From positions 62,001-126,000 of IMG/VR virus record IMGVR_UViG_3300024239_000011: 64,000 nucleotides of DNA. One strand, 5' to 3'. Each line of letters starts with the position of its first letter. Position 1 is the first letter of the stretch. The notes beneath the pieces are model-generated. The model was not told where the DNA came from. It saw only the letters and a list, made by a program, of their open reading frames with translations, and did no database searches. Position numbers and translations under genes: made by a program. Positions 1,547 to 44,423 of this stretch are shown one piece after another.

Positions 1547-2185
1547 ATGAGCGCCCGTTTCAAATATCAAACTACACATCATTTTGAGTGGTCGCCCGGT
1601 GTGTCGAACGACGACGAGGTGCTGAAATCCTCTGCTCATTTTGTTGGGAAGCGTGTCATCGCTACCAAAAAGATGGATGGTGAGAACACCAGCATCTATT
1701 GGGACAGTTATATGCACGCCCGCAGCATTGATGGGCATGGTCACGAAAGCCAGGACTGGGTGAAGGGTCAAGTGGTGCCTTATGTGGCGCCGCACCTCCC
1801 CGAAGGCTGGCGCATCTGCGGCGAGAATCTGTATGCGAAGCATTCACTCGCCTACGACAATCTCCCGACCTATTTCATGGTTTTCTCGATCTGGGATGCC
1901 GAGAACCGCGCCCTGTCCTGGGATGACACCAAGGAATGGTGCGAACTGCTGGGGCTTCAGACCGTACCGGTTCTCTATGACGGTATTTGGGACGAAAAAA
2001 TCATCCGACAACTGGCAACCCAACTCGACCTGAACACGGACGAGGGGTATGTTGTGCGGGTAGCGGACTCATTCAGTTTTCAAGATTTTGTGATGTCGCT
2101 CGCTAAGTACGTCCGCAAAGGGCATGTCCAGACGGATCGTCATTGGAAACGTACCTGGGTTCCAAATAAACTCATCAATTCATAG
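1547..2185 (+). CDS. ATP-dependent RNA ligase family protein
   Basis: Nucleotidyltransferase motif I KMDGEN, ICGEN, FMVFSI, EGYVVR, KYVR. Confidence 0.85.
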   Translation: MSARFKYQTTHHFEWSPGVSNDDEVLKSSAHFVGKRVIATKKMDGENTSIYWDSYMHARSIDGHGHESQDWVKGQVVPYVAPHLPEGWRICGENLYAKHSLAYDNLPTYFMVFSIWDAENRALSWDDTKEWCELLGLQTVPVLYDGIWDEKIIRQLATQLDLNTDEGYVVRVADSFSFQDFVMSLAKYVRKGHVQTDRHWKRTWVPNKLINS

Positions 2186-5756: not shown

Positions 5757-6209
5757 TTATAAATTACCAGCGCGAATGCGATCCCGAATTGACATCAATC
5801 GTGAACAGAATTCTTTTGTTGTGAGAATTGTTTCTGTGTAAACCGTATGCCCAATGTCATGTGTCAGATTTTCGTCTCCGGTTGCAAGCAACGCTTTACG
5901 AAAATCTTCAACTTTTGCCAATGCTTCATATGCGCGGTCAAGAAGGATTTGATAGTCTACTCCGTCGCGCCGCAATGCTTTGCCTTTCCAGTACAGCATA
6001 CCGGTCTTTTGCCAATCCCGGTTCGACCGTTTTTTAGCTGTCCACCCGGTCAATCTGCATACAAGCCGTTGTTCTTCCTGATCTTTGTAGGGCAGGCTTT
6101 GAAGGAAACCTTCCATACTGGCGCATAAAACTCCATCCACCTCGAAACGATGCGCGGCGAAGTTTGAAAGCTTATTTAACGGGTAGGTACCGGTACTGAG
6201 AATATCCAT
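5757..6209 (-). CDS. NADAR-family protein, T4 gp30.3-like
   Basis: LSNFA..F..DG....SMEGFLQ, LYW.G, FRKALLAT, TILTTKEF; start set at MDILSTG. Confidence 0.75.
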   Translation of the reverse strand: MDILSTGTYPLNKLSNFAAHRFEVDGVLCASMEGFLQSLPYKDQEEQRLVCRLTGWTAKKRSNRDWQKTGMLYWKGKALRRDGVDYQILLDRAYEALAKVEDFRKALLATGDENLTHDIGHTVYTETILTTKEFCSRLMSIRDRIRAGNL

Positions 6210-6335
6210 ATGAATAGAATATTTCCTACTCGCGAAAGTGTCAAAAACATTTTGACCACATATGCGGTTTAGCTTACCATCCCGCAACTCGTGCCATTTT
6301 GGCTGCCAAGATTCGCTTATAAGGATAACCCGTCG

Positions 6336-7661
6336 ATGACCGTCAAATCCCATCACGATGACGATGATGAGCCAACGATGGAAGATATTCTGACAAGCAT
6401 TCGGCGTGTCCTGACCGAAGACGATGACGATGTGTTTCAAGAAAAACCAACCGCACACGATGATATCGACGCGATGTTTTCTGAAAAAATTCCACAATCT
6501 TCGACGGGGTGCCGTGGCAGCGACGACGAAGAAGCTCTCATGCGTGAATGGGCGGCAATGGCAGGGCGCAACGAACCGGATGAACCGGATGAGAATGATA
6601 CCGATGGCATGGCAGCCGAATGGGAAGCCATGCTCGGTGGTTGTGATGGGGATTGCGAACATTGCGATGACAACACCCCCATGGAGTCCACCCGAGTGTT
6701 AAATCAAGACGAAATCGATTCGCTTCTAGGATTCGATGACGACCATGGGCGCGGTGACAATATGTCTGGTATACAGTGTATTCTCAATTCCGCCCTTGTG
6801 TCATACGAACGACTTCCCATGCTGGAAGTGGTATGTGATCGTTTAGTGCGTACATTATCTACATCCTTGCGGAATTTCTTCAACGATAACGTCGAAGTGT
6901 CGCTGGACAACATTCTGTCGCTTCGTTTCGGCGACTATCTGAACTCGATTCCGCTGCCTGCCATGCTGGCGGTATTCAAAGCCGAAGAATGGGACAATCA
7001 CGGTCTATTGACCATCGATTCGTCGCTGATCTACTCAACGGTCGATGTGCTGCTGGGTGGTCGTCGCGGCACGGCGGCTATGCGCATTGAAGGTCGCCCT
7101 TACACCACCATCGAGCGTGCCTTGGTAGAACGCATGGTGCATGTCGTAATGTCGGAAATGTCTACGGCTTTCGATCCGGTGTCACCCGTAACGTTTCGTC
7201 TTGACCGGATGGAAACCAATCCGCGCTTTGCCGCCATCTCACGTCCCAATAATGCGGTAATTGTGGTCAAATTGCGCATTGACATGCAAGATCGGGGCGG
7301 GCGCATGGAATTGCTATTGCCCTATGCTACCCTAGAACCTATCCGCGAATTATTGCTTCAACATTTCATGGGAGAAAAATTTGGTCGCGACTCGATCTGG
7401 GAAACCCACTTAGCCGAAGAACTATGGAAAAGCGAGATTGAAGCTGAGGTCGTGGTTGCGGAAGCTAAATCAACTCTTAACACGATACTCAATTTGAAAG
7501 TTGGGGATACGTTAGACCTTGGTCGTCGCCGCCCACATTATAAAATGGTTTGCTCGAATGTCGTGGTCGGGCACTGCGTCAACAGTAATACCGATGATAA
7601 AGATGACATCATGGGCATGACTGATGTTTCGGTCGTCACCCTCTTCCCGAAAGGTAATTAG
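6336..7661 (+). CDS. fliM: flagellar motor switch protein FliM with PopZ-like N-terminal helix
   Basis: MAAEWEAML, RVLNQDEIDSLLGF, YERLPMLEVVCDRLVR, RFGDYLNSIPLPAML, GGRMELLLPYATLEPIRELL; N-term EPTMEDILTSIRRVLTEDD. Confidence 0.95.
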   Translation: MTVKSHHDDDDEPTMEDILTSIRRVLTEDDDDVFQEKPTAHDDIDAMFSEKIPQSSTGCRGSDDEEALMREWAAMAGRNEPDEPDENDTDGMAAEWEAMLGGCDGDCEHCDDNTPMESTRVLNQDEIDSLLGFDDDHGRGDNMSGIQCILNSALVSYERLPMLEVVCDRLVRTLSTSLRNFFNDNVEVSLDNILSLRFGDYLNSIPLPAMLAVFKAEEWDNHGLLTIDSSLIYSTVDVLLGGRRGTAAMRIEGRPYTTIERALVERMVHVVMSEMSTAFDPVSPVTFRLDRMETNPRFAAISRPNNAVIVVKLRIDMQDRGGRMELLLPYATLEPIRELLLQHFMGEKFGRDSIWETHLAEELWKSEIEAEVVVAEAKSTLNTILNLKVGDTLDLGRRRPHYKMVCSNVVVGHCVNSNTDDKDDIMGMTDVSVVTLFPKGN

Positions 7662-7662
7662 T

Positions 7663-7959
7663 ATGGATGATTTCGATATGGCTGATGTTAAGCCAGCCCC
7701 GGAACGAATCACGGCGAAACATCTGGAAGCTGTTTACGATATTCCAGTAACCGTGCGGGCAGTCCTCGGTAAAGCAACTCTACAAGTGAACCAGCTTCTC
7801 AAGCTTGGACGCGGTGCAGTCATTGAGATTGACCGCAAGGTTGGTGAGGCAGTGGATATTTACGTCAATGACCGGTTAGTCGCTCGTGGTGAAGTGGTCG
7901 TGGTGGAAGATCGCCTGGGCATCACTATGACGGAAATCATCAAGACGGATCGCGATTAA
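7663..7959 (+). CDS. fliN: flagellar motor switch protein FliN
   Basis: LEAVYDIPV.V.AVLG...LLKLGRGAVIEIDRKVGEAVDIYVNDRLVARGEVVVVEDRLGITMTEI. Confidence 0.95.
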   Translation: MDDFDMADVKPAPERITAKHLEAVYDIPVTVRAVLGKATLQVNQLLKLGRGAVIEIDRKVGEAVDIYVNDRLVARGEVVVVEDRLGITMTEIIKTDRD

Positions 7960-8186
7960 TGACAGATGGTATCTATGACGTTTCATTGGAAGCTATGGTG
8001 ATCCTGGGCACCGCCACACTTCCCATTTCGCAACTTCTTAAACTCGGTCGCGGCGCCATCATCGAGCTTGATCGCAAAGTCAATGACCCCGTTGATGTGG
8101 TGATCAACAACAAAACCGTGGCAAAAGCCGAAGTGGTGGTTATTGAACACAATCTGGGTATTACCATCACTGAGATGCTGAAGTAA
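7959..8186 (+). CDS. second, short FliN/SpoA-domain protein
   Basis: VILGTATLPISQLLKLGRGAIIELDRKVNDPVDV; stop/start overlap with fliN. Confidence 0.88.
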   Translation: MTDGIYDVSLEAMVILGTATLPISQLLKLGRGAIIELDRKVNDPVDVVINNKTVAKAEVVVIEHNLGITITEMLK

Positions 8187-9008: not shown

Positions 9009-9508
9009 TTTTTTACCTGTGCAGCCAGTGCCTCAACTGCTTGATGCATCCGAATAAGGTCATTCTCCAACTTAGCAAACCCAGGATGAGGGACAAATTG
9101 CGGGGGTGGGGGTAATGTGGGTGGGGCATTGATTGTTATCGGTACTGTCGGGGCGGGCGGTGGTGTATTCGGCTGTACGATCACCGGGGCGCGTTCTACC
9201 GGGGCAATTTTTACCACATCCACCTTCCCAATGGGGACCAGTGGTTGAACTACAATTGTAGTAGTGTTTGGTTTCACGTTGGGGGGTATTGGCACCACTT
9301 TGACCAACGGAACTGTACCGGGGTTTGGCGAAACCACTTGTTGCGGTGATTCTGTTCCAAACACCGAAGAACCGGCAACCAGCGCCACAATGATGGCACT
9401 GATCATAAAGACCATACCACTAAAATTACGCAATTGGTTAGACGCCGACACGCGGAAAACGACGAACGCCATAATTGCCGCGATGGTAATCAGGGTGAGG
9501 ATGCCCAT
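9005..9508 (-). CDS. membrane-anchored proline-rich protein
   Basis: two N-terminal hydrophobic segments, Pro/Val-rich region, short coiled coil. Confidence 0.65.
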   Translation of the reverse strand: MGILTLITIAAIMAFVVFRVSASNQLRNFSGMVFMISAIIVALVAGSSVFGTESPQQVVSPNPGTVPLVKVVPIPPNVKPNTTTIVVQPLVPIGKVDVVKIAPVERAPVIVQPNTPPPAPTVPITINAPPTLPPPPQFVPHPGFAKLENDLIRMHQAVEALAAQVKK

Positions 9509-10665
9509 TAGCGCATCCCCACTGCCTGATATACCTGATTCATTGTCTGCTGAGCAATGGTATCCACCTGCGCAGCACCCGTGGCAAGATGAGCATCGAC
9601 TACTTCCGGATGAGCGATGTATTCCCGCATGCGCTTCCCAATGGGAACAATTACGTCCACCAATGCATCAGTAACCGCAGGCTTTAATTTCCCAAAGCCC
9701 TGACCACCGAATTGGGCACAAGCTTCATCTAACGTCATCCCCCGAAGAACCGCGTAGATTGTCATAAGGTTCTTGGCACCAAGCCGACCTTCCAATCCTA
9801 CTGCCTCACCGGGCAATAGATCGGCATCCGTGGTTGCCCTCTTGATTTTCTTGGCGATTTGGTCGGCAGTGTCCGTCAGGAAAACAACTTCCTCTTCCGT
9901 TTCCATGGTGGACTTGGACATCTTCCGATCCGGATACCGCAGCGACATAATACGGGCACCGGTTTCGCTGATGATATCCTGGGGAACCGGGAAAATATCC
10001 CCGAACTGATGATTGAAAGACCGCACGATCTGGCGTGCAAGCTGAAGGTGCTGCACTTGGTCATCACCCACGGGAACATGGGTCGCCTTGTACAGCAGGA
10101 TGTCAGCAGCCATCAGCACTGGGTACATATACAAACCGGCACCGATGCTTTCGCTCTGAGTGTTCTCGTAAGCGTCAAGAATTTCGATGGCTTCCGCGCG
10201 ACGTTGTTCATCGGTGCGGGTATCGTCAAACCCTTCCTGCTGGTATAGGGTATTGCTGATGGACAGACCCGCTTCGAGAAGTTGTTCTAACTTCTCGTCC
10301 ACCGAAATACCAGCTTTCGCTTTGAACTGAGTCATTCGATTCAACCAGCCCATCCGCGCCTGGGTTGTTAATACCCAGGCAAGCTGGGAATGACCGGCGA
10401 CGCGGCTTTGTTGGAAGATCGAAGACCGCTCGGGATCGACACCGCATGCCAGATAGGCAGCCACCGTGGAACGGATGCTGTTACGCAGCACCGCTGGATT
10501 TTGCGGTACCGTGATGGCGTGAAGGTCTACGACGCAATAGATGCATTCGTGGTGATCTTGCAAGTCCACCCACTGCTTCAGAGCGCCCAGATAGTTGCCA
10601 AGGTGCAGAATTCCGCTCTGTGTCGCCGTGCCGGTAGGCTGAACTCCGGAAAATACCCTACCCAT
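9508..10665 (-). CDS. trpS: tryptophanyl-tRNA synthetase with about 50 aa insertion
   Basis: VFSGVQPTG, HLGNYLG, VDLHAIT, YPVLMAADILLY, VPVGDDQVQHL, KMSKS. Confidence 0.95.
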   Translation of the reverse strand: MGRVFSGVQPTGTATQSGILHLGNYLGALKQWVDLQDHHECIYCVVDLHAITVPQNPAVLRNSIRSTVAAYLACGVDPERSSIFQQSRVAGHSQLAWVLTTQARMGWLNRMTQFKAKAGISVDEKLEQLLEAGLSISNTLYQQEGFDDTRTDEQRRAEAIEILDAYENTQSESIGAGLYMYPVLMAADILLYKATHVPVGDDQVQHLQLARQIVRSFNHQFGDIFPVPQDIISETGARIMSLRYPDRKMSKSTMETEEEVVFLTDTADQIAKKIKRATTDADLLPGEAVGLEGRLGAKNLMTIYAVLRGMTLDEACAQFGGQGFGKLKPAVTDALVDVIVPIGKRMREYIAHPEVVDAHLATGAAQVDTIAQQTMNQVYQAVGMR

Positions 10666-10774
10666 TATCTCTACCCCGATTATGCATAAACTCATCAACA
10701 GGATGGCAGCCAAAACCGACTTTGGCAAGTTCTTTGCGGTATGGATGCCATCCAACGTTGATCGGGTGGAAGTA

Positions 10775-15658: not shown

Positions 15659-15708
15659 ATTGGTTATTTATAAGCTTTTAGCCGCACATGATCAAGAAGA
15701 AATACACC

Positions 15709-26066: not shown

Positions 26067-26672
26067 TCATTTCCACTGGGTGCGGCGCTGCTGCTTCCAA
26101 TTCTTCTGCGGGCGCCGCCAGTAATCATCCCAGACAGTCGGCAGGCACGCCTTGCGACGACGACCACGAGCCTTGATTCGATATTCGACCGCATCTTCAT
26201 CGTAGTTCAGGAAATCGTTCTCACGAATCTCCTGGGTCGTTGCCATGTGACGAAGCGACTGGCACTTCCAGTGACGGCGGCAACGGATGCCCTTGACCGG
26301 ACCATTCCGGAAATCCGTCTCCGGATCGTAGTTAAAACGGGACCACTGCGTGCGGTTCGGGCACCCAAGCTGGAAAAACCGTTCCACAATGGTTTCCGGC
26401 GCAATCACCAGCCCCAATTCATCCAGAAGGACAAACTGCCCGCGCGTCCACGACGCCGGTTCCAGGGAGCTACGAATGTACGCCATCCGCGCAACACGGA
26501 CGATCTCACGATGAAACGTGGGTTCGTCCATCAAGGAAGTCTTAACCACCCCATTGTAGGCAATATAAATGAATGGACGACTTGCCCGAGATTTCAGGAA
26601 AGCATCCAAACTTTCATAGACCCACGTTTCCTTGCTGTGGATGTCCTTGAGAGTGACTTCATACTTGTACAT
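26067..26672 (-). CDS. hypothetical protein, paralog of 26887..27471
   Basis: shared C-terminal GPV.G...TTQE.RENDFLNYDEDA.EY.I.ARG...LP..WDD...KNWK.QR.T.W. Confidence 0.8.
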   Translation of the reverse strand: MYKYEVTLKDIHSKETWVYESLDAFLKSRASRPFIYIAYNGVVKTSLMDEPTFHREIVRVARMAYIRSSLEPASWTRGQFVLLDELGLVIAPETIVERFFQLGCPNRTQWSRFNYDPETDFRNGPVKGIRCRRHWKCQSLRHMATTQEIRENDFLNYDEDAVEYRIKARGRRRKACLPTVWDDYWRRPQKNWKQQRRTQWK

Positions 26673-26753
26673 ATTGGTTCTCCTTTAACGCTAATTGCGT
26701 TAACGGAAACCCAAATATTCCTCGCGAATAACGTACATTTTATTCTCCGACGT

Positions 26754-26880
26754 TGATGGACGCTGCCGGATTTGAACCGCGCTCGGCTCCGTCGAGCCTA
26801 TCCCAGTTGGTCAAATACCCGTCCAGGGCGCCCCATAGATGGTGGAGCGCGTGGGGATCGAACCCACTGACCAGCGCCCT
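26754..26880 (-). ncRNA. circularly permuted alanine-type tRNA-like element (tmRNA-TLD-like or YrlA-like)
   Basis: T arm, GCGCTCC-A-CCA, TCTAT, then GGGGCGC pairing with G3-U70; second T arm downstream. Confidence 0.65.
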
Positions 26881-27994: not shown

Positions 27995-28042
27995 AAGAAA
28001 AGAAAAGCGGCACCGAAAGGTGCCGCTTTTCTTTGTAATGAG

Positions 28043-31620: not shown

Positions 31621-32399
31621 GGCTGGTAGGTCAACGACCTACCAGCCTTTAAACTTGGTGGAGCCTGCCCGAAACGAATTTTCGACGTTGATAAATACAT
31701 CGTGAACCAAAACAACAAGGCTCCACGATGGAAATTGAACTCAAAGAGAAACTTTCTAAACGACCACAAAATCAGAATTTTGGCGCCCGTGCAGGACGTG
31801 ATTATGGCTTGAAGGTTGCTGCTGAACATCGGGCTGCTTATGCCCTGTCTCCGAAACATTGTACCGAATGCGACTCGGAACTCCCGTATGAACAACGCGA
31901 CTGCAAATTTTGCTCTCGGTCATGTGCCGCCTCGCACAACAACAAAGAACGCAATCGACCAAAACGCGAAGCCATCTGTCTTCATTGTGGGAAAACTTTC
32001 TCGGCTAACCGAAAAAGCCATGGAAAGTTTTGCTCTCTTAAATGCCAAGGACAACACAAATGGGAAAATGAAACAAAACCACGTATTCAAGAAGGAAAAG
32101 TACGTGAACGAAAAACGCTCAAGAAATTCCTCATTGAACGGGACGGACATCAATGTTCGTGCTGTGGAAACACTGAGTGGCTGGGCAAACCCATTCCCAT
32201 TGAAGTAGATCACATCGACGGCAACCCAGCTAATGACATGCCTGACAATTTGCGTCTACTCTGCCCAAATTGTCATAGTATGACAGAAACCTACAAAGGT
32301 AAGAATATTGGGTCCGGTAGGGGTGCGAGAGGAATATCGCGATCCTAAAAACAATGGCTGGTAGGTCGATGACCTACCAGCCACTAAACTTGGTGGAGC
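31621..32399. repeat. 44-bp imperfect direct repeat (31621-31664 and 32356-32399) flanking an HNH gene
   Basis: GGCTGGTAGGTC-nnn-GACCTACCAGCC-nnn-AAACTTGGTGGAGC (hairpin plus tRNA-Ala 3' end). Confidence 0.9.
31728..32348 (+). CDS. HNH homing endonuclease with zinc fingers
   Basis: EVDHIDGNPANDMPDNLRLLCPNCHS. Confidence 0.92.
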   Translation: MEIELKEKLSKRPQNQNFGARAGRDYGLKVAAEHRAAYALSPKHCTECDSELPYEQRDCKFCSRSCAASHNNKERNRPKREAICLHCGKTFSANRKSHGKFCSLKCQGQHKWENETKPRIQEGKVRERKTLKKFLIERDGHQCSCCGNTEWLGKPIPIEVDHIDGNPANDMPDNLRLLCPNCHSMTETYKGKNIGSGRGARGISRS

Positions 32400-32467
32400 A
32401 GAGGGGGATCGAACCCCTGACCTGAAGCTTGCAAAGCTACCGCTCGTCCCAACTGAGCTACTGCCCC
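32391..32467 (-). tRNA. tRNA-Ala(UGC)
   Basis: G3-U70, canonical. Confidence 0.92.
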
Positions 32468-32536
32468 ATAAATGACAACTCGCGTCGCCATGACCAAACT
32501 ATTTATACGAACCGCTCGGGCGGCGCAATAAGAAAA

Positions 32537-33217
32537 TTAAAAAATCTCGATTCCTATTTCCCCCAGGAATTTCGTCAACGGGCGGGATGGTACAAACAAT
32601 TTTTCTCGTTTGGCCAGCAGAACTTTGCCCATGCCTTCCTGGGTACGTTTATTCACAATTTTTCGATGTTGAAATACTTGTAAAACTTCGGTCGCATCAA
32701 ACCCCATCATGGTTACTGCGATGGTGTCATGTTTAATACGAAAAACGTGTTTTTCGTCAACATGATGTTTCACTTCATCGATAACCATTCGCATCACAAG
32801 CTCCCCAATATCATACCCGAAAGCTTTAGTAAAATGGTTCATGTTGAATATAGTTAACATGCATATAGGGGTATCATTTCGCTGAAGCGACAAGAAATCA
32901 ATGAATACCTGTCGATCTTCATCAACATCAAGTGAAATCTTTTTGAAAGCATCAAAGTCTGCACGCAGGTTACCAACATCAGCCGTAACCTCTTCAACGT
33001 CACGCACCACCCCATTAAGGTCAGAACGGGTTCGAATGGTTGCATCTAGAAGAATTTCAGCAGCTTCACGTAATACATCAATATTTTGAGCATTTTGAAT
33101 ATGGTCGGCGTAGGTGGACAACGTTGCATCAAAAACTGTTGCCCGATGCTTCATCCGCCCGAGAATTTCTTCGATTTTCGAAAGGTTCTGTTCAAACCTG
33201 CCGTTATGGGACATCAA
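32537..33217 (-). CDS. degenerate GGDEF protein (coiled coil plus dead diguanylate cyclase)
   Basis: FNMNHFTKAFGYDIGELVMR, FRIKHDTIAV in place of RYGGEEF, RKIVNKRTQEGMGKV. Confidence 0.65.
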   Translation of the reverse strand: MMSHNGRFEQNLSKIEEILGRMKHRATVFDATLSTYADHIQNAQNIDVLREAAEILLDATIRTRSDLNGVVRDVEEVTADVGNLRADFDAFKKISLDVDEDRQVFIDFLSLQRNDTPICMLTIFNMNHFTKAFGYDIGELVMRMVIDEVKHHVDEKHVFRIKHDTIAVTMMGFDATEVLQVFQHRKIVNKRTQEGMGKVLLAKREKLFVPSRPLTKFLGEIGIEIF

Positions 33218-33407
33218 TGCTCACCAAAAATAATTGTTCGTAACCTACTTAGCCGATTTTTGATATCAGGGAACGTAGGATATAACCCACCTATTGCAAG
33301 TATAAACATATTATGGTATCTAGATAGTCGAAGAAAAAGAAGGCATAACTAAAAAAAGAGGCGCAATAATAGGGCGCCCCTTTTCACAACCAATAAAGGC
33401 GGTTTCA

Positions 33408-34109
33408 ATGTACACCCTCCCCACCACAAAATTTCTCGTTACTATTGTTTTTTCGCTGACCTTCTATGGTATTTGTAATTTAATCGCGTCACCCGTGCCA
33501 TTTACCCTTGGTACTTTTTGGTATCTACCAGAAACATGGGAACCGTTCTGGTGGGCTATTGCACCGATGCTGGTGTGGGGATGTGCGATAAACATCATCT
33601 TTACTGCCGCACACAAAGGTGACCACCCTGGTGAAATTTTGGTTGCGGGAACCCTTGTCAGTCTTCATGCCGGAATTCTTGAGGAACTGGTTTACAGATG
33701 GGCTGCATTTTATGCCGCTATCATCAGCGTCAAGATCGGTGATTTTCTGCTTGGCGGGTTTATGTTCCCCCATGGGTTGACGTGGGTTTTCCACAATTAC
33801 GTGGTTGGACATATCGTCAATTTCACCACATTTGGTTTATTGAACGACTTTATCTTCCATCCAACGACCTGGGCGATTGGTGCGGGAATGATCGCGGTTA
33901 ATGCCACTTTCCGCGATGGTCACAAATACCAGGGTTTCTGGGGTTTTTGGAATAGCTGGTTCTGCGGTATGTACCTGTTCTACGTGATGTTCACGTATGG
34001 ACTTCCAGCAGCAATTATCACGCACTTTTTGTACGACTTCATCATCTTCGCAACCATTGCCGCAAAGGTAGCGGTTTTACCGAATTCGATGAAACGGGTC
34101 AGACTATAA
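33408..34109 (+). CDS. CPBP (Abi/CAAX) intramembrane metalloprotease
   Basis: GILEELVYRW, FRDGH, ITHFLYD; multi-TM. Confidence 0.85.
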   Translation: MYTLPTTKFLVTIVFSLTFYGICNLIASPVPFTLGTFWYLPETWEPFWWAIAPMLVWGCAINIIFTAAHKGDHPGEILVAGTLVSLHAGILEELVYRWAAFYAAIISVKIGDFLLGGFMFPHGLTWVFHNYVVGHIVNFTTFGLLNDFIFHPTTWAIGAGMIAVNATFRDGHKYQGFWGFWNSWFCGMYLFYVMFTYGLPAAIITHFLYDFIIFATIAAKVAVLPNSMKRVRL

Positions 34110-34421: not shown

Positions 34422-34505
34422 TGGCGATCCTGAGAGGATTCGAACCCCCCTTTTCAGCATCCGACTACGGTTAAGCGGGTAGAAGCCGCCCCCGGCTACA
34501 GGATC
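34422..34505 (-). tRNA. rearranged tRNA-Arg(UCU)-like gene
   Basis: perfect acceptor and T arms; anticodon arm 8 nt after acceptor; GGAT-GC-TGAAAA after it. Confidence 0.7.
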
Positions 34506-35111: not shown

Positions 35112-35738
35112 TTACGGTCTTAATCCGCGTGTCCGTCTACCATTTCCGCGATTGCGGTATCCAAATGTAGGTGTTTGGCTATGACAATTTGGACAAAGCA
35201 AACGAAGATTGTCAGGTTTATTATTCGACGGGTCGCCGTCAATGTGATCAAGTTGAAAAACTAACGTTTCGTTATTCCATCCCATGATCCCACATTTACT
35301 ACATTGCTCACCATCACGTTCGGCAACGTAGCGTTTTAGTGTCGGGGACGTAGTAACCTCACCGCGCCGAATTCGTTCGTTCGTCTTTATTTTACGCAAA
35401 TGTTCGGCGCGACACGACGAGGAACAAAATTTGCGGCGGCGAGACTGGGTAGTTGAAGTAATCTTAAATTTCTCATTACAATGGTGACAAACACAATGTG
35501 TTTCAGGCTCAAGTTTGAGTTTTAAAGTTTCCAAGCGTGTAGTTGCAGTTGCTCTAGCCGAGCAAGACGACGAACAATATTTGTTGGCTCTCCGCTCATA
35601 TGGAATAACGGTGTTACAGCACTCACAAACTTTTGGATTTTCGTAATACTTGTTCCGATTTTGCTCAGCAATTCCTATCGCATATTTTGCCCCGATTACT
35701 CCGAAATTTTTATTTTGTGGTCGTTGCGACATACTCAT
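35112..35738 (-). CDS. HNH homing endonuclease, paralog of 31728..32348
   Basis: QLDHIDGDPSNNKPDNLRLLCPNCHSQT. Confidence 0.92.
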   Translation of the reverse strand: MSMSQRPQNKNFGVIGAKYAIGIAEQNRNKYYENPKVCECCNTVIPYERRANKYCSSSCSARATATTRLETLKLKLEPETHCVCHHCNEKFKITSTTQSRRRKFCSSSCRAEHLRKIKTNERIRRGEVTTSPTLKRYVAERDGEQCSKCGIMGWNNETLVFQLDHIDGDPSNNKPDNLRLLCPNCHSQTPTFGYRNRGNGRRTRGLRP

Positions 35739-39816: not shown

Positions 39817-39953
39817 ATAAAAAATTGATAAATGATGACTAGCCCCAACTCATCGCCGCCATCAACGAACCACCATAACAGCAGTCCTTGCCTAACTTGG
39901 TCTACCCCAATAAAACCTAGTTTTATAGCATAGATGCTATGCTAAATACTTGC

Positions 39954-40727
39954 ATGGAACCAAACATTATAAATGAAATACGGTCGAAGCGACGTGATGG
40001 ATATAGTCTTCAGTGGCTATCTCGTGAATATAATGTCGCAGTTGGCACCATACGATACCATACTAAGGGCATCCTTGTTAATAAAACCCCACATACATTG
40101 ATACAAGAGAAGCCAATCATCGTACCAATACCATCCGAGGATTGGGCATATTTTTGGGGATTTTATACTGGGGATGGTTGTTTAACGCAAATGACAAGAA
40201 GTTATTCAATAAGTATTTCCTGTGACATCAAGTATGAATATTTGATTGCGAATTATAGTGCTATTCTTTCTGATTTATTCAGACGCGAAGCAAAAATTTA
40301 CAAAACCAAACGGAATTGTGCAATCGTTCGTATTCACGGGGTTGACCTACCCAACATTCTTCAGCTACCACCGGGGGCGAAAACTGAAGAGTATAAAGTC
40401 CCAGAGTGGATATTTTCAGATAGAAAATACGCAGTTCAATTTCTAAAAGGTCTTATAGAAACTGACGGAAGTTGTTACCGACGAGATATAACACAATATG
40501 GTGTCATGTTCACTCAAAAAAACAAAACGATATTCGACTATTACAGCACCGCAATGTCTCTTTGTGATTACTCATTTACCAAGAGTAAAGGTAATGCTTA
40601 CCAAGCACAGACATCAACCAAAAACGGTGCAAAGGAAATGATTGATGAATTAAGGCTTCATCAAAAGATGCGAACATATTCAAGAAAAAATGGCGCGGGT
40701 ACGGAGAATCGAACTCCGACTCCTTGA
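39954..40727 (+). CDS. LAGLIDADG homing endonuclease with N-terminal HTH
   Basis: AYFWGFYTGDG and FLKGLIETDG; CTAAATA at 39942. Confidence 0.88.
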   Translation: MEPNIINEIRSKRRDGYSLQWLSREYNVAVGTIRYHTKGILVNKTPHTLIQEKPIIVPIPSEDWAYFWGFYTGDGCLTQMTRSYSISISCDIKYEYLIANYSAILSDLFRREAKIYKTKRNCAIVRIHGVDLPNILQLPPGAKTEEYKVPEWIFSDRKYAVQFLKGLIETDGSCYRRDITQYGVMFTQKNKTIFDYYSTAMSLCDYSFTKSKGNAYQAQTSTKNGAKEMIDELRLHQKMRTYSRKNGAGTENRTPTP

Positions 40728-40949: not shown

Positions 40950-41534
40950 TTAATGTATACGCAGCCCGCGTGATTTTCTCCCATTCCCCCTGTTTTTTCC
41001 TTTGGACGTGGGCATCAGAGAATGGCAATTCGGGCAAAGTAAGCGAATATTTTCAGGTTTATTATTCGAAGCATCTCCATTGACATGATCTAGTTCAAGG
41101 CTCAATGGTTGACCGTGCCAATCGGAAATGCCGCATTTTTCACAACAATTACCTCGAATTTTTCTAAGGTAATTTTTCAGAGTTTTCCTTTCTGAAACTA
41201 ATCCATTTTCTATTTTTGGTAATGTTTCTTGAGTGAACTGGTAATCTCGCTGGCATTTATGAGAACAATATGTCCTTATTGCACGATTTTCACCCGTAAT
41301 TTCATTTCCGCAATTAAGACAAAAGCATTTCTGAAAATTTTCAGCAGCGTAAAATAGACCAGAGCACCGTTGACAGCAGAACCTATTCTTTCGCATATCA
41401 TACGGTAATGGCTGTTTGCAGTATTCACAACACGATGGACTTATCTCATAAGTCCGTATTTTTTCTTGTTTTATGAGTTTAGCTTTCTCTGCCCATGCTT
41501 TTCCGCCGAGTTTCCCTGCTTCTGATTTGTTCAT
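40950..41534 (-). CDS. HNH homing endonuclease, third paralog
   Basis: ELDHVNGDASNNKPENIRLLCPNCHS. Confidence 0.92.
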   Translation of the reverse strand: MNKSEAGKLGGKAWAEKAKLIKQEKIRTYEISPSCCEYCKQPLPYDMRKNRFCCQRCSGLFYAAENFQKCFCLNCGNEITGENRAIRTYCSHKCQRDYQFTQETLPKIENGLVSERKTLKNYLRKIRGNCCEKCGISDWHGQPLSLELDHVNGDASNNKPENIRLLCPNCHSLMPTSKGKNRGNGRKSRGLRIH

Positions 41535-42748: not shown

Positions 42749-43282
42749 ATGTTCATCCAAAACAAATACACCGCCGCGTATTTTCGCATCATTGAGAAAG
42801 CCAGATCAGAAGCACGAAGCAAATGTGACGGCTATTTTGAACGCCATCACATCACACCGCGATCTTTTGGTGGGACAAACAAGAAAGACAATCTTGTACT
42901 TCTGAAACCACGAGAGCATTTCGTATGCCATCTTCTCTTAACTAAGATGGTTTGTGCCAATTCACCGGAATGGCACAAAATGCTTCATAGCTTTATGCTT
43001 ATGAAAGGTCAAAACAAATTCCAAGACCGTTACATCAATAACCGTCTATACGATAAACTCAAAGAGGCGTATGCCGAATATCGACGCTCCGTTACCATTG
43101 GAGTTCCGCATACCGCAGAACATCGGGCGAAGATCGCACAAGCAATGACGGGACGCACGATGTCAGAAGAAGCCAAGAAAGCGATTTCCGAAAAAGCTGC
43201 CAAGCGCCCACGCAAACCGTTTAGCGACGAATATCGCGCAAAGATGTCTGCGATAATGAAAGAACGTCGGAAAACGGGTTGA
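42749..43282 (+). CDS. HNH plus NUMOD3-like homing endonuclease
   Basis: ERHHITPRSFGG.N..DNLV.L.PREHFVCH; HTAEHRAKIA, MSEEAKKAIS repeats; TATAAATA at 42709. Confidence 0.88.
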   Translation: MFIQNKYTAAYFRIIEKARSEARSKCDGYFERHHITPRSFGGTNKKDNLVLLKPREHFVCHLLLTKMVCANSPEWHKMLHSFMLMKGQNKFQDRYINNRLYDKLKEAYAEYRRSVTIGVPHTAEHRAKIAQAMTGRTMSEEAKKAISEKAAKRPRKPFSDEYRAKMSAIMKERRKTG

Positions 43283-43601: not shown

Positions 43602-44423
43602 TTATTGATGCGCCACTACCTTCGAAATCGCTTCTTTGATTATACTCAAATCACCGTAAGCGATTTTTACCTTAGTTCTAATGTACTCCATTTTCTCGTG
43701 ATCCTGTTGCATGACCAGATGGTTCTTCGGATCAAGATATAAGTCAAAATCTGGCAAATAAAAATCTGGAAAATATAGATGTTTAATAGCTCGGTTGTCA
43801 TGCCATTCTATGGGTTTCGGGCGTATCCATTTGATTCCCATGGTATCAAGCAATGATGCAATTTCCAGTTCCCACGTACTCTGCAATTTTATTACTTTGT
43901 TTTGGTAGCGATTGAAATAACAAATGACCTTCGCCCCTAATGTTGGCTTGCTATTATTTCTCAATGCGACGATACAAGCCATTCCCCCACATGTCTTTCG
44001 TTGTTTTAATGCATCCTTGCCACAAATAGGACAGTGTTTAGCAGGGGTTTGTTGCTTTGAACACCCGATAGCATCCAATGCAGCATGCCACGACCCGAAA
44101 ACACTCACGTAATGACAATAATGCGGATATTTCAACCCGTCAAACATAGTGCTGGTTGGTATTGTCCCGGTTTCATCTGCATATCGTCGTAATTCTGATA
44201 GCAAAACATCATTGGAATGTTTTGTTCCTTTATTATTACCAAACTTAACAATAGGCAGACCAGCTTCGGTCAATGCACTATTCCAATTTCCGAACACATT
44301 CTTATAAGTGTTGGAACCAAATAGATAACCCTCAGGCTTGGGGCGAAAATCCCTTTCACGGGGCACCCTTCCAAATTCCTTGTAAAAACGTTGCAACTCT
44401 GCTAACATGATCTCTCTAGACAT
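43602..44423 (-). CDS. homing-endonuclease-associated repeats plus PD-(D/E)XK nuclease domain
   Basis: two EL.R.....G..P...F...Y..VFG.W..AL repeats; QSTWE...YFPDFYLPDFDLYLDPK. Confidence 0.8.
   Translation of the reverse strand: MSREIMLAELQRFYKEFGRVPRERDFRPKPEGYLFGSNTYKNVFGNWNSALTEAGLPIVKFGNNKGTKHSNDVLLSELRRYADETGTIPTSTMFDGLKYPHYCHYVSVFGSWHAALDAIGCSKQQTPAKHCPICGKDALKQRKTCGGMACIVALRNNSKPTLGAKVICYFNRYQNKVIKLQSTWELEIASLLDTMGIKWIRPKPIEWHDNRAIKHLYFPDFYLPDFDLYLDPKNHLVMQQDHEKMEYIRTKVKIAYGDLSIIKEAISKVVAHQ

Follow-up and report, generated by a model that had tools for sequence, protein, structure and literature searches.

Why does a very large phage carry, within an array of tRNA genes, a short gene whose product resembles a bacterial diguanylate cyclase with its active site replaced? 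We analyzed this locus in a window of 64,000 nt (bases 62001-126000 of a 543,035-bp IMG/VR virus record; GC 48.7%), and the features that bear on the answer are collected in Table 1; all translations used genetic code 11 only. The open reading frame has exactly the boundaries given by an earlier, sequence-only reading and opens with the codons TTG-ATG, and the 225-aa version of its product, here called P0001, is the form present in public protein collections. In the strain of run X4, the 2 nt at 33219-33218, which lie between GGTGAG and the TTG, are deleted. Because this deletion puts the TTG against GGTGAG, we favored the ATG at 33214, which is probably where translation starts.

Table 1. Coordinates of the features discussed (positions in the window unless another sequence is named)
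Feature	Coordinates	Strand	Remarks
DgcB-like gene, predicted catalytically dead	32537..33217	-	ORF from TTG at 33217, 226 aa; 225 aa (P0001) from ATG at 33214
Shine-Dalgarno-like GGTGAG	33220..33225	-	5 nt ahead of ATG at 33214
Stalk of P0001	32939..33208	-	helices, residues 3-40 and 45-92; homologous to DgcB-type cyclase stalk; predicted intermolecular four-helix bundle
Degenerate, shortened GGDEF-fold domain of P0001	32549..32938	-	residues 93-222
T121-I-F123-N-M	32840..32854	-	replaces the family's invariant D-I-D-H-F (metal-site aspartates)
KHDTI	32720..32734	-	residues 161-165, at the beta-hairpin place of the GG(D/E)EF motif; strands 157-161 and 164-167 (AF2)
TATAAATA box, T4 late-promoter-like	32500-32507	-	between the gene's stop and tRNA-Ala
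tRNA-Ala(TGC)	32391..32467	-	directly downstream of the gene, same strand
Strong terminator-like hairpin	32352..32386	-	16-bp stem plus T run, past tRNA-Ala; first terminator downstream of the gene
CPBP/Rce1-like membrane protein	33408..34109	+	upstream, divergent neighbor; 233 aa; EExxxR and HxxxD motifs
HNH gene	31728..32348
HNH gene	35112..35738
HNH gene	40950..41534
HNH gene	42749..43282
LAGLIDADG gene	39939..40727
HNH-repeat protein	43602..44423
RNA ligase	1547..2185	+
T4 gp30.3-like protein	5757..6662	-
Class-I (Trp/Tyr type) aminoacyl-tRNA synthetase	9508..10755	-
FliM	6291..7661	+	PF02154, 221.8 bits
FliN-like gene	7624..7959	+	85.7 bits; directly past FliM
FliN-like gene	7959..8186	+	77.1 bits
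FliG_C-bearing gene	G000:306760-307080	-	339-aa frame
FliG_C-bearing gene	G000:152072-152332	+	181-aa frame
Receiver (CheY-like) domain	G000:323810-324148	+
Receiver (CheY-like) domain	G000:127401-127745	-
Receiver (CheY-like) domain	G000:464252-464533	-
PAS-GGDEF, GGDEF motif intact	L002 757..2082	+	G000 ~345.8-347.2 kb
GGDEF-EAL	L003 697..2112	-	G000 ~373.5-374.9 kb

The record represents a genuine megaphage of the T4 kind: one of its genes specifies a major capsid protein of gp23 type (270.5 bits), and the window alone has 37 tRNA genes, with genes for HNH and LAGLIDADG homing endonucleases scattered among them. Together with the gp30.3-like protein, the RNA ligase and the GC content, these features led us to reject a bacterial contig miscalled as viral. 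The phage also carries flagellar genes, and the GC content across its FliM gene (positions 6001-8000) is 0.495; Magnetospirillum genomes have a GC content well above the 48.7% of the phage, a value from which we took FliM to be a resident phage gene and not assembled host DNA. This FliM shares 76-77% identity with its counterparts in Magnetospirillum sulfuroxidans and in related Rhodospirillaceae metagenome-assembled genomes, which agrees with the alphaproteobacterial setting proposed from the sequence at the outset, and from this similarity alone the host is probably a Magnetospirillum-type bacterium. Four of the five genomes with the closest FliM contain exactly one full-length DgcB-like cyclase. 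The same gene neighborhood also occurs in another assembly, on an 869,618-bp ENA contig (k141_178484), compared with 543 kb for the record; this could mean that the record is shorter than the phage genome, or that the contig is chimeric or a concatemer.

The relationship of P0001 to cyclases lies below the level at which family searches respond. P0001 had no Pfam match at E ≤ 1, falling short of the 23.8-bit gathering cut-off of PF00990; against PHROGs it gave noise alone and nothing usable, against NCBIfam its GGDEF-type matches were all sub-threshold, and single-sequence phmmer against the PDB returned chance matches only. The gene was unmatched in the GenBank phage collection by DNA or tblastn. 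When 1.84 billion representatives were searched with phmmer, the protein had three relatives, P0002, P0003 and P0004. P0002 (222 aa, E 9e-12) is 23% identical to P0001 and scores 22.8 bits against PF00990, slightly below the cut-off. P0003 (351 aa, E 2e-4) and P0004 (349 aa, E 5e-4; both E values apply to the library as a whole) are GGEEF cyclases of canonical type (PF00990 ~149 bits), and their alignments cover residues 4-217 of P0001, that is, both the stalk and the domain. In a word-index protein search, P0001 and P0002 each retrieved themselves alone, and scanning IMG/VR for the pattern of their two-member alignment added no other relatives. A profile built from P0001 and P0002 alone had Caulobacter DgcB (6ttr_A, in which a coiled coil is joined to GGDEF; E 0.006) as its best solved match, every row better than E 0.3, and nearly all of the rest, being GGDEF chains.

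Structure prediction led to the same family. From the single sequence, the ESM Atlas placed P0001 among GGDEF clusters (features 0.96, 182 shared; Atlas model TM 0.50). AF2 gave two long helices (residues 3-40 and 45-92) both without and with an alignment; without one, these helices alone folded and the C-terminal domain failed (pLDDT 47), and with a 95-row alignment the pLDDT was 85 for P0001 and ~94 in the C-terminal domain. Because that alignment consists mostly of true cyclases, on which the model leans, we counted the AF2 evidence for the fold jointly with the independent Atlas model. All 50 of the top 50 Foldseek matches in the PDB were GGDEF domains, with Caulobacter DgcB (6tts/6ttr) first (E 1e-5), and VIA-align superimposed model residues 93-222 on 6ttr_A with a Z score of 12.9 (rmsd 2.7 A over 129 residues), so that the palm-like beta-alpha-alpha-beta-beta-alpha-beta core is found by structural match to solved GGDEF domains. 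The sequence-only reading had described an N-terminal coiled coil and a GGDEF-like fold of DgcB type and had suggested profile or structure searches; both kinds of search recovered that fold, with Caulobacter DgcB as the best match in each.

The stalk carries the resemblance to DgcB further. When residues 1-96 of P0001 and 1-86 of P0002 were aligned by hhalign with the stalk of 20 DgcB-type cyclases, the match had 93.2% probability (E 3e-7) over 88 ungapped columns. P0001 keeps 22 of 24 stalk positions hydrophobic (counting positions with a hydrophobic residue in 85% or more of the DgcB-type family) at an identity to the host family of ~20-25%, and the stretch K-x-V-N-[KR]-R-T-G-E-x-x-G is common to P0001 and these cyclases. 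The N-terminal ~85-aa domain of the family, with its conserved P-T-P-x-N..W-Y, is absent, and P0001 begins at the stalk. The named family members are Alphaproteobacteria, mostly Rhodospirillales (Magnetospirillum, Varunaivibrio, Ferrovibrio, Geminicoccaceae and Micavibrio). Thus, P0001 is a truncated phage copy of a DgcB-type diguanylate cyclase in which the stalk and the GGDEF fold have been kept.

The roles of individual columns in binding metal, base and phosphate are established from PleD-type cyclases, and we read P0001 against them in a column map with 93 DgcB-type cyclases. The GGEEF motif, invariant in all 93, is K161-H-D-T-I165 in P0001, where the third position alone stays acidic, and the D-I-D-H-F-K stretch is T121-I-F-N-M-N126, with both aspartates of the DxD gone (T121 and F123). 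Likewise, the N-D pair is replaced by T129-K130, G-H by G133-Y134, G-D by G137-E138, S..G by A201..R203 and R-A-D..L-Y by E219-I-G..I-F. P0001 terminates ahead of the final AK..GR(N) stretch of the family consensus, with a shorter helix past the motif and a truncated last helix. R159, just ahead of the motif, and G133 belong to the small set of columns that do not vary anywhere in the alignment. All of the catalytic columns that are invariant or near-invariant in the family are therefore replaced, as the initial description of a catalytically dead protein with a KHDTI loop and lost metal-binding aspartates had held. The motif glutamate is essential in both PleD (E370Q) and DgcB (E261Q) (PMC7885107). 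By its residues, P0001 should be unable to make c-di-GMP.

We also considered whether the protein might bind a nucleotide instead of making one. The RxxD inhibitory site, five residues ahead of the motif, is how other degenerate GGDEF domains bind c-di-GMP; it is absent from P0001, which has V152-D-E-K155 there and H156 at the position of the family's near-invariant Asp. Since the catalytic columns are replaced and RxxD is missing, P0001 would be neither a cyclase nor an I-site receptor, and the latter role was ruled out. A broader possibility is that the degenerate domain binds, senses or sequesters c-di-GMP, GTP or another nucleotide by other means, given that many degenerate GGDEF domains are receptors for c-di-GMP or GTP. 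Sequestration of signaling nucleotides is known in phages (PMC12657218). However, the substitutions at the RxxD site weigh against this explanation, as do replacement of the guanine-binding N-D pair and Asp, loss of the C-terminal phosphate-binding helix and a search in which PilZ was not found in the phage, and we consider it improbable.

If the enzyme is lost, is anything retained? P0002 has the same short build as P0001, with the N-terminal domain lost and the helix past the motif shortened, and its motif, SMDTY, is degenerate and has the D-T pair in common with P0001; this D-T pair and a GKVL stretch are the same in the two proteins and unlike the cyclases. The 22.6-kb contig that encodes P0002 has at least six further protein homologues in common with this phage and so is a fragment of a related phage. 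Because the two proteins share their length, N-terminal loss, degenerate motif and shortened helix, they appear to have retained a noncatalytic function. The genes beside that of P0002 on its contig (L004 1304..5869) encode an sCache protein, a Bax1-I membrane protein and a hybrid histidine kinase with the domains PAS-HisKA-HATPase-receiver; this phage has a Bax1-I homologue of its own (G000 26149-26793).

Strain variation speaks to the same question. The identical P0001 protein occurs on seven contigs from several samples, and the gene is covered by contigs of four runs (X1-X4) of one subsurface/soil study, with the reading frame intact in every sample that has the gene; among RNA runs, the gene was found in none. 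All three strain single-nucleotide polymorphisms inside the gene are synonymous; as ~22% of possible single changes are synonymous, the chance of this outcome is ~0.011. These sequence comparisons argue that the gene is maintained under selection and, with the shared build of P0002, that a noncatalytic function has been retained. They bear directly on the idea that P0001 is what is left of a captured host gene that is decaying and no longer has a function, an idea to which the saturated branches of its tree (see below), the loss of all catalytic residues and the location in an insertion-prone region of tRNA and homing endonuclease genes would lend themselves. With an intact frame, only synonymous changes, a conserved stalk core, a confidently predicted fold and a 23%-identical relative that keeps its length and build in another phage, we regard a functionless remnant as very improbable.

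The phage has two canonical GGDEF domains of its own, in the PAS-GGDEF and GGDEF-EAL proteins. In a maximum-likelihood tree these two were sisters (100/97) and are therefore phage paralogues; they grouped with non-DgcB host GGDEF domains in a starred clade, and P0001 lay outside it as the sister of P0002 (100/98). The branches of P0001 and P0002 are saturated, so their exact origin within the DgcB-type family is not readable from the tree. The profile of this degenerate pair matched the host DgcB-like protein with 89% probability and the phage PAS-GGDEF with 17%, and in Magnetospirillum sp. SS-4, P0001 matched 1 of 62 GGDEF candidates, namely the DgcB-like gene. The tree and the profile scores both speak against P0001 being a diverged or decayed duplicate of the phage's own GGDEF genes, which we rejected because those genes fall in a separate clade. 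The same results bear on the proposal that P0001 is a regulatory partner of the two phage enzymes, tuning them through GGDEF-GGDEF contact. All three proteins are encoded by one phage, and degenerate GGDEF domains often work through protein contacts, but neither enzyme has a DgcB-type stalk, their clade excludes P0001, the profile prefers the host protein and the genes are more than 250 kb apart; we give this proposal little credence.

GGDEF cyclases are active as dimers only, with one GTP per domain, and are held together by a dimeric stalk or by a partner domain. A compatible stalk joined to a dead domain is a textbook dominant-negative design. We infer, tentatively and at slightly less than an even chance, that P0001 is a dominant-negative heterodimer partner of the host DgcB-type cyclase, which makes this the likeliest of the mechanisms considered. 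Its stalk would pair with that of the single host enzyme in a four-helix-bundle heterodimer; such a heterodimer would be inactive, and P0001 would act as a dominant-negative subunit by which the host enzyme is switched off.

Complex prediction covered the likeliest pair, in which P0001 was modeled together with the DgcB-like protein of M. sulfuroxidans (L096 1471..2595, residues 100-374). The predicted complex passed, with a score of 0.68 against 0.00 for the best of three controls; of 78 solved complexes, 51 attain the pass mark, as do 2 of 108 mismatched pairs. At least 87% of the contacts agreed between runs, and the partner had a pLDDT of at least 80. The confident predicted contacts were all between the stalks (host 103-197 with phage 3-88), and they were pseudo-symmetric, host 166 pairing with phage 32 and host 131-135 with phage 55-59, as would be expected of a homodimer-like four-helix bundle. 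In the calibration of this test, close cousins of true partners pass too (10 of 12), and we therefore read the pass as family likeness, that is, as a dimerization-competent look and not as proof of binding; in this model it also does not show a preference for the heterodimer over a homodimer. In the original proposal of a dominant-negative partner or scaffold mimic, the dominant-negative idea was, within these limits, strengthened computationally by the 22 hydrophobic positions kept and by the predicted complex. At ~20-25% identity in the stalk, divergence could equally well insulate P0001 from the host enzyme.

An intact stalk suits self-association as well as it suits mixed dimers, which brings in a homodimeric decoy or scaffold: P0001 would pair with itself and either compete for a docking partner of DgcB, such as the stator or another motor-associated protein, or recruit phage proteins, with no mixed dimers formed. 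Caulobacter DgcB physically associates with stator subcomplexes (PMC7885107), and the D-T pair and GKVL stretch that set P0001 and P0002 apart from the cyclases may mark a new surface. Yet the N-terminal ~85-aa domain, a natural candidate for docking or sensing, is what P0001 is missing, and no MotA scored over the cut-off in the phage. We regard this decoy or scaffold as unlikely, and return to the dominant-negative subunit for what follows.

What would the phage gain by silencing a DgcB-type cyclase? In Caulobacter, DgcB is associated with the flagellar stator and provides the contact-induced burst of c-di-GMP by which holdfast synthesis is triggered (PMC7885107), and we carry this motor link over, by analogy, to the Magnetospirillum DgcB-like enzyme. 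If that enzyme were blocked, the infected cell would be kept from its sessile program, and the PAS-GGDEF, GGDEF-EAL, CheY-like and FliG, FliM and FliN proteins of the phage could then set c-di-GMP levels and motor behavior. Judged by their domains, FliG, FliM and FliN would make a complete C-ring set. For a phage equipped with C-ring proteins, CheY-like receivers and c-di-GMP enzymes of its own, manipulation of the decision to swim or stick is plausible, and P0001 may be one viral tool for steering it. Since one of the phage's own cyclases is apparently active, a plain aim of lowering c-di-GMP is not self-evident. The sequence-only reading had P0001 acting with the FliM/FliN module; these genes are real, but they lie 25 kb from the P0001 gene, on the opposite strand and with many genes between, and the link is thematic only. 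That all of these parts work as a coordinated megaphage toolkit, in which a DgcB-poisoning mimic, a cyclase and a phosphodiesterase of the phage's own, CheY-like receivers and a whole C-ring take over the swim-or-stick decision of the host, is possible, if rather doubtful.

Among known proteins, the closest in build are Caulobacter crescentus DgcB (6ttr/6tts) and the ~350-aa DgcB-type cyclases of Rhodospirillales (P0003, P0008 and L096 1471..2595), in which, as in P0001, a helical stalk is followed by a GGDEF domain; P0001 differs from them in being phage encoded and in lacking the N-terminal ~85-aa domain, the GGEEF motif and the ligand-binding residues. PopA, PelD and Bdellovibrio CdgA are degenerate GGDEF proteins that are c-di-GMP receptors via RxxD. 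P0001 is like them in that a GGDEF fold would serve signaling without cyclase activity, whereas it lacks RxxD and has only a stalk, with no receiver or transmembrane parts. GGDEF-fold proteins are also found in other very large phages, namely, Gp350 of Bacillus phage G (~250 aa) and an SP-15 "diguanylate cyclase" (BFVD), and their likeness to P0001 is at the level of the fold only (TM 0.39-0.43, 11-13% identity). The Pseudomonas cyclase YfiN is bound by phage peptides (PMC8085984). They are likewise phage encoded, with direct interference with a host diguanylate cyclase proposed or shown; P0001 differs from these peptides in being a dead paralogue of its proposed target, with subunit poisoning as its proposed mode of action.

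Among degenerate GGDEF proteins, which are common, P0001 stands out as a viral, truncated, dead copy of one host cyclase in which the dimerization stalk has been kept. A limited literature search found no description of a phage-encoded, truncated, dead paralogue of one host cyclase, and to our knowledge there is no earlier viral dominant-negative diguanylate cyclase. If the proposed mechanism is true, P0001 would be the first, a clean natural case of subunit poisoning by a phage against second-messenger signaling and evidence that phages reprogram flagellar behavior during infection; it would also provide a genetic tool for the specific silencing of DgcB-type cyclases. Together with the FliG, FliM and FliN, CheY-like and c-di-GMP genes of the phage, it makes it directly testable whether very large phages manage how their hosts move and attach over a long infection cycle.

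The immediate surroundings of the gene showed several further features. Between positions 28000 and 44000 of the window, at least six genes of homing endonuclease type lie among the tRNA genes of the array. One ARAGORN call in this array, at 34422..34505(-), has a four-base anticodon, ctta, with no amino acid assigned; it is perhaps a miscall, or perhaps a tRNA that resembles frameshift suppressors. The product of the divergent upstream gene had no match in a Pfam scan and was grouped by the ESM Atlas with the Abi/CPBP (Rce1-like) intramembrane proteases (features 0.96, TM 0.49-0.55). In the intergenic region between that gene and the P0001 gene, the X4 strain has 73 nt (33317-33391) swapped for 121 other letters. 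The TATAAATA box downstream of the P0001 gene belongs to a set that is enriched in the window, with seven sites against 1.5 expected; six of the seven, among them a further example at 15665-15672(-), are on the minus strand, and some of the sites lie immediately ahead of tRNA genes.
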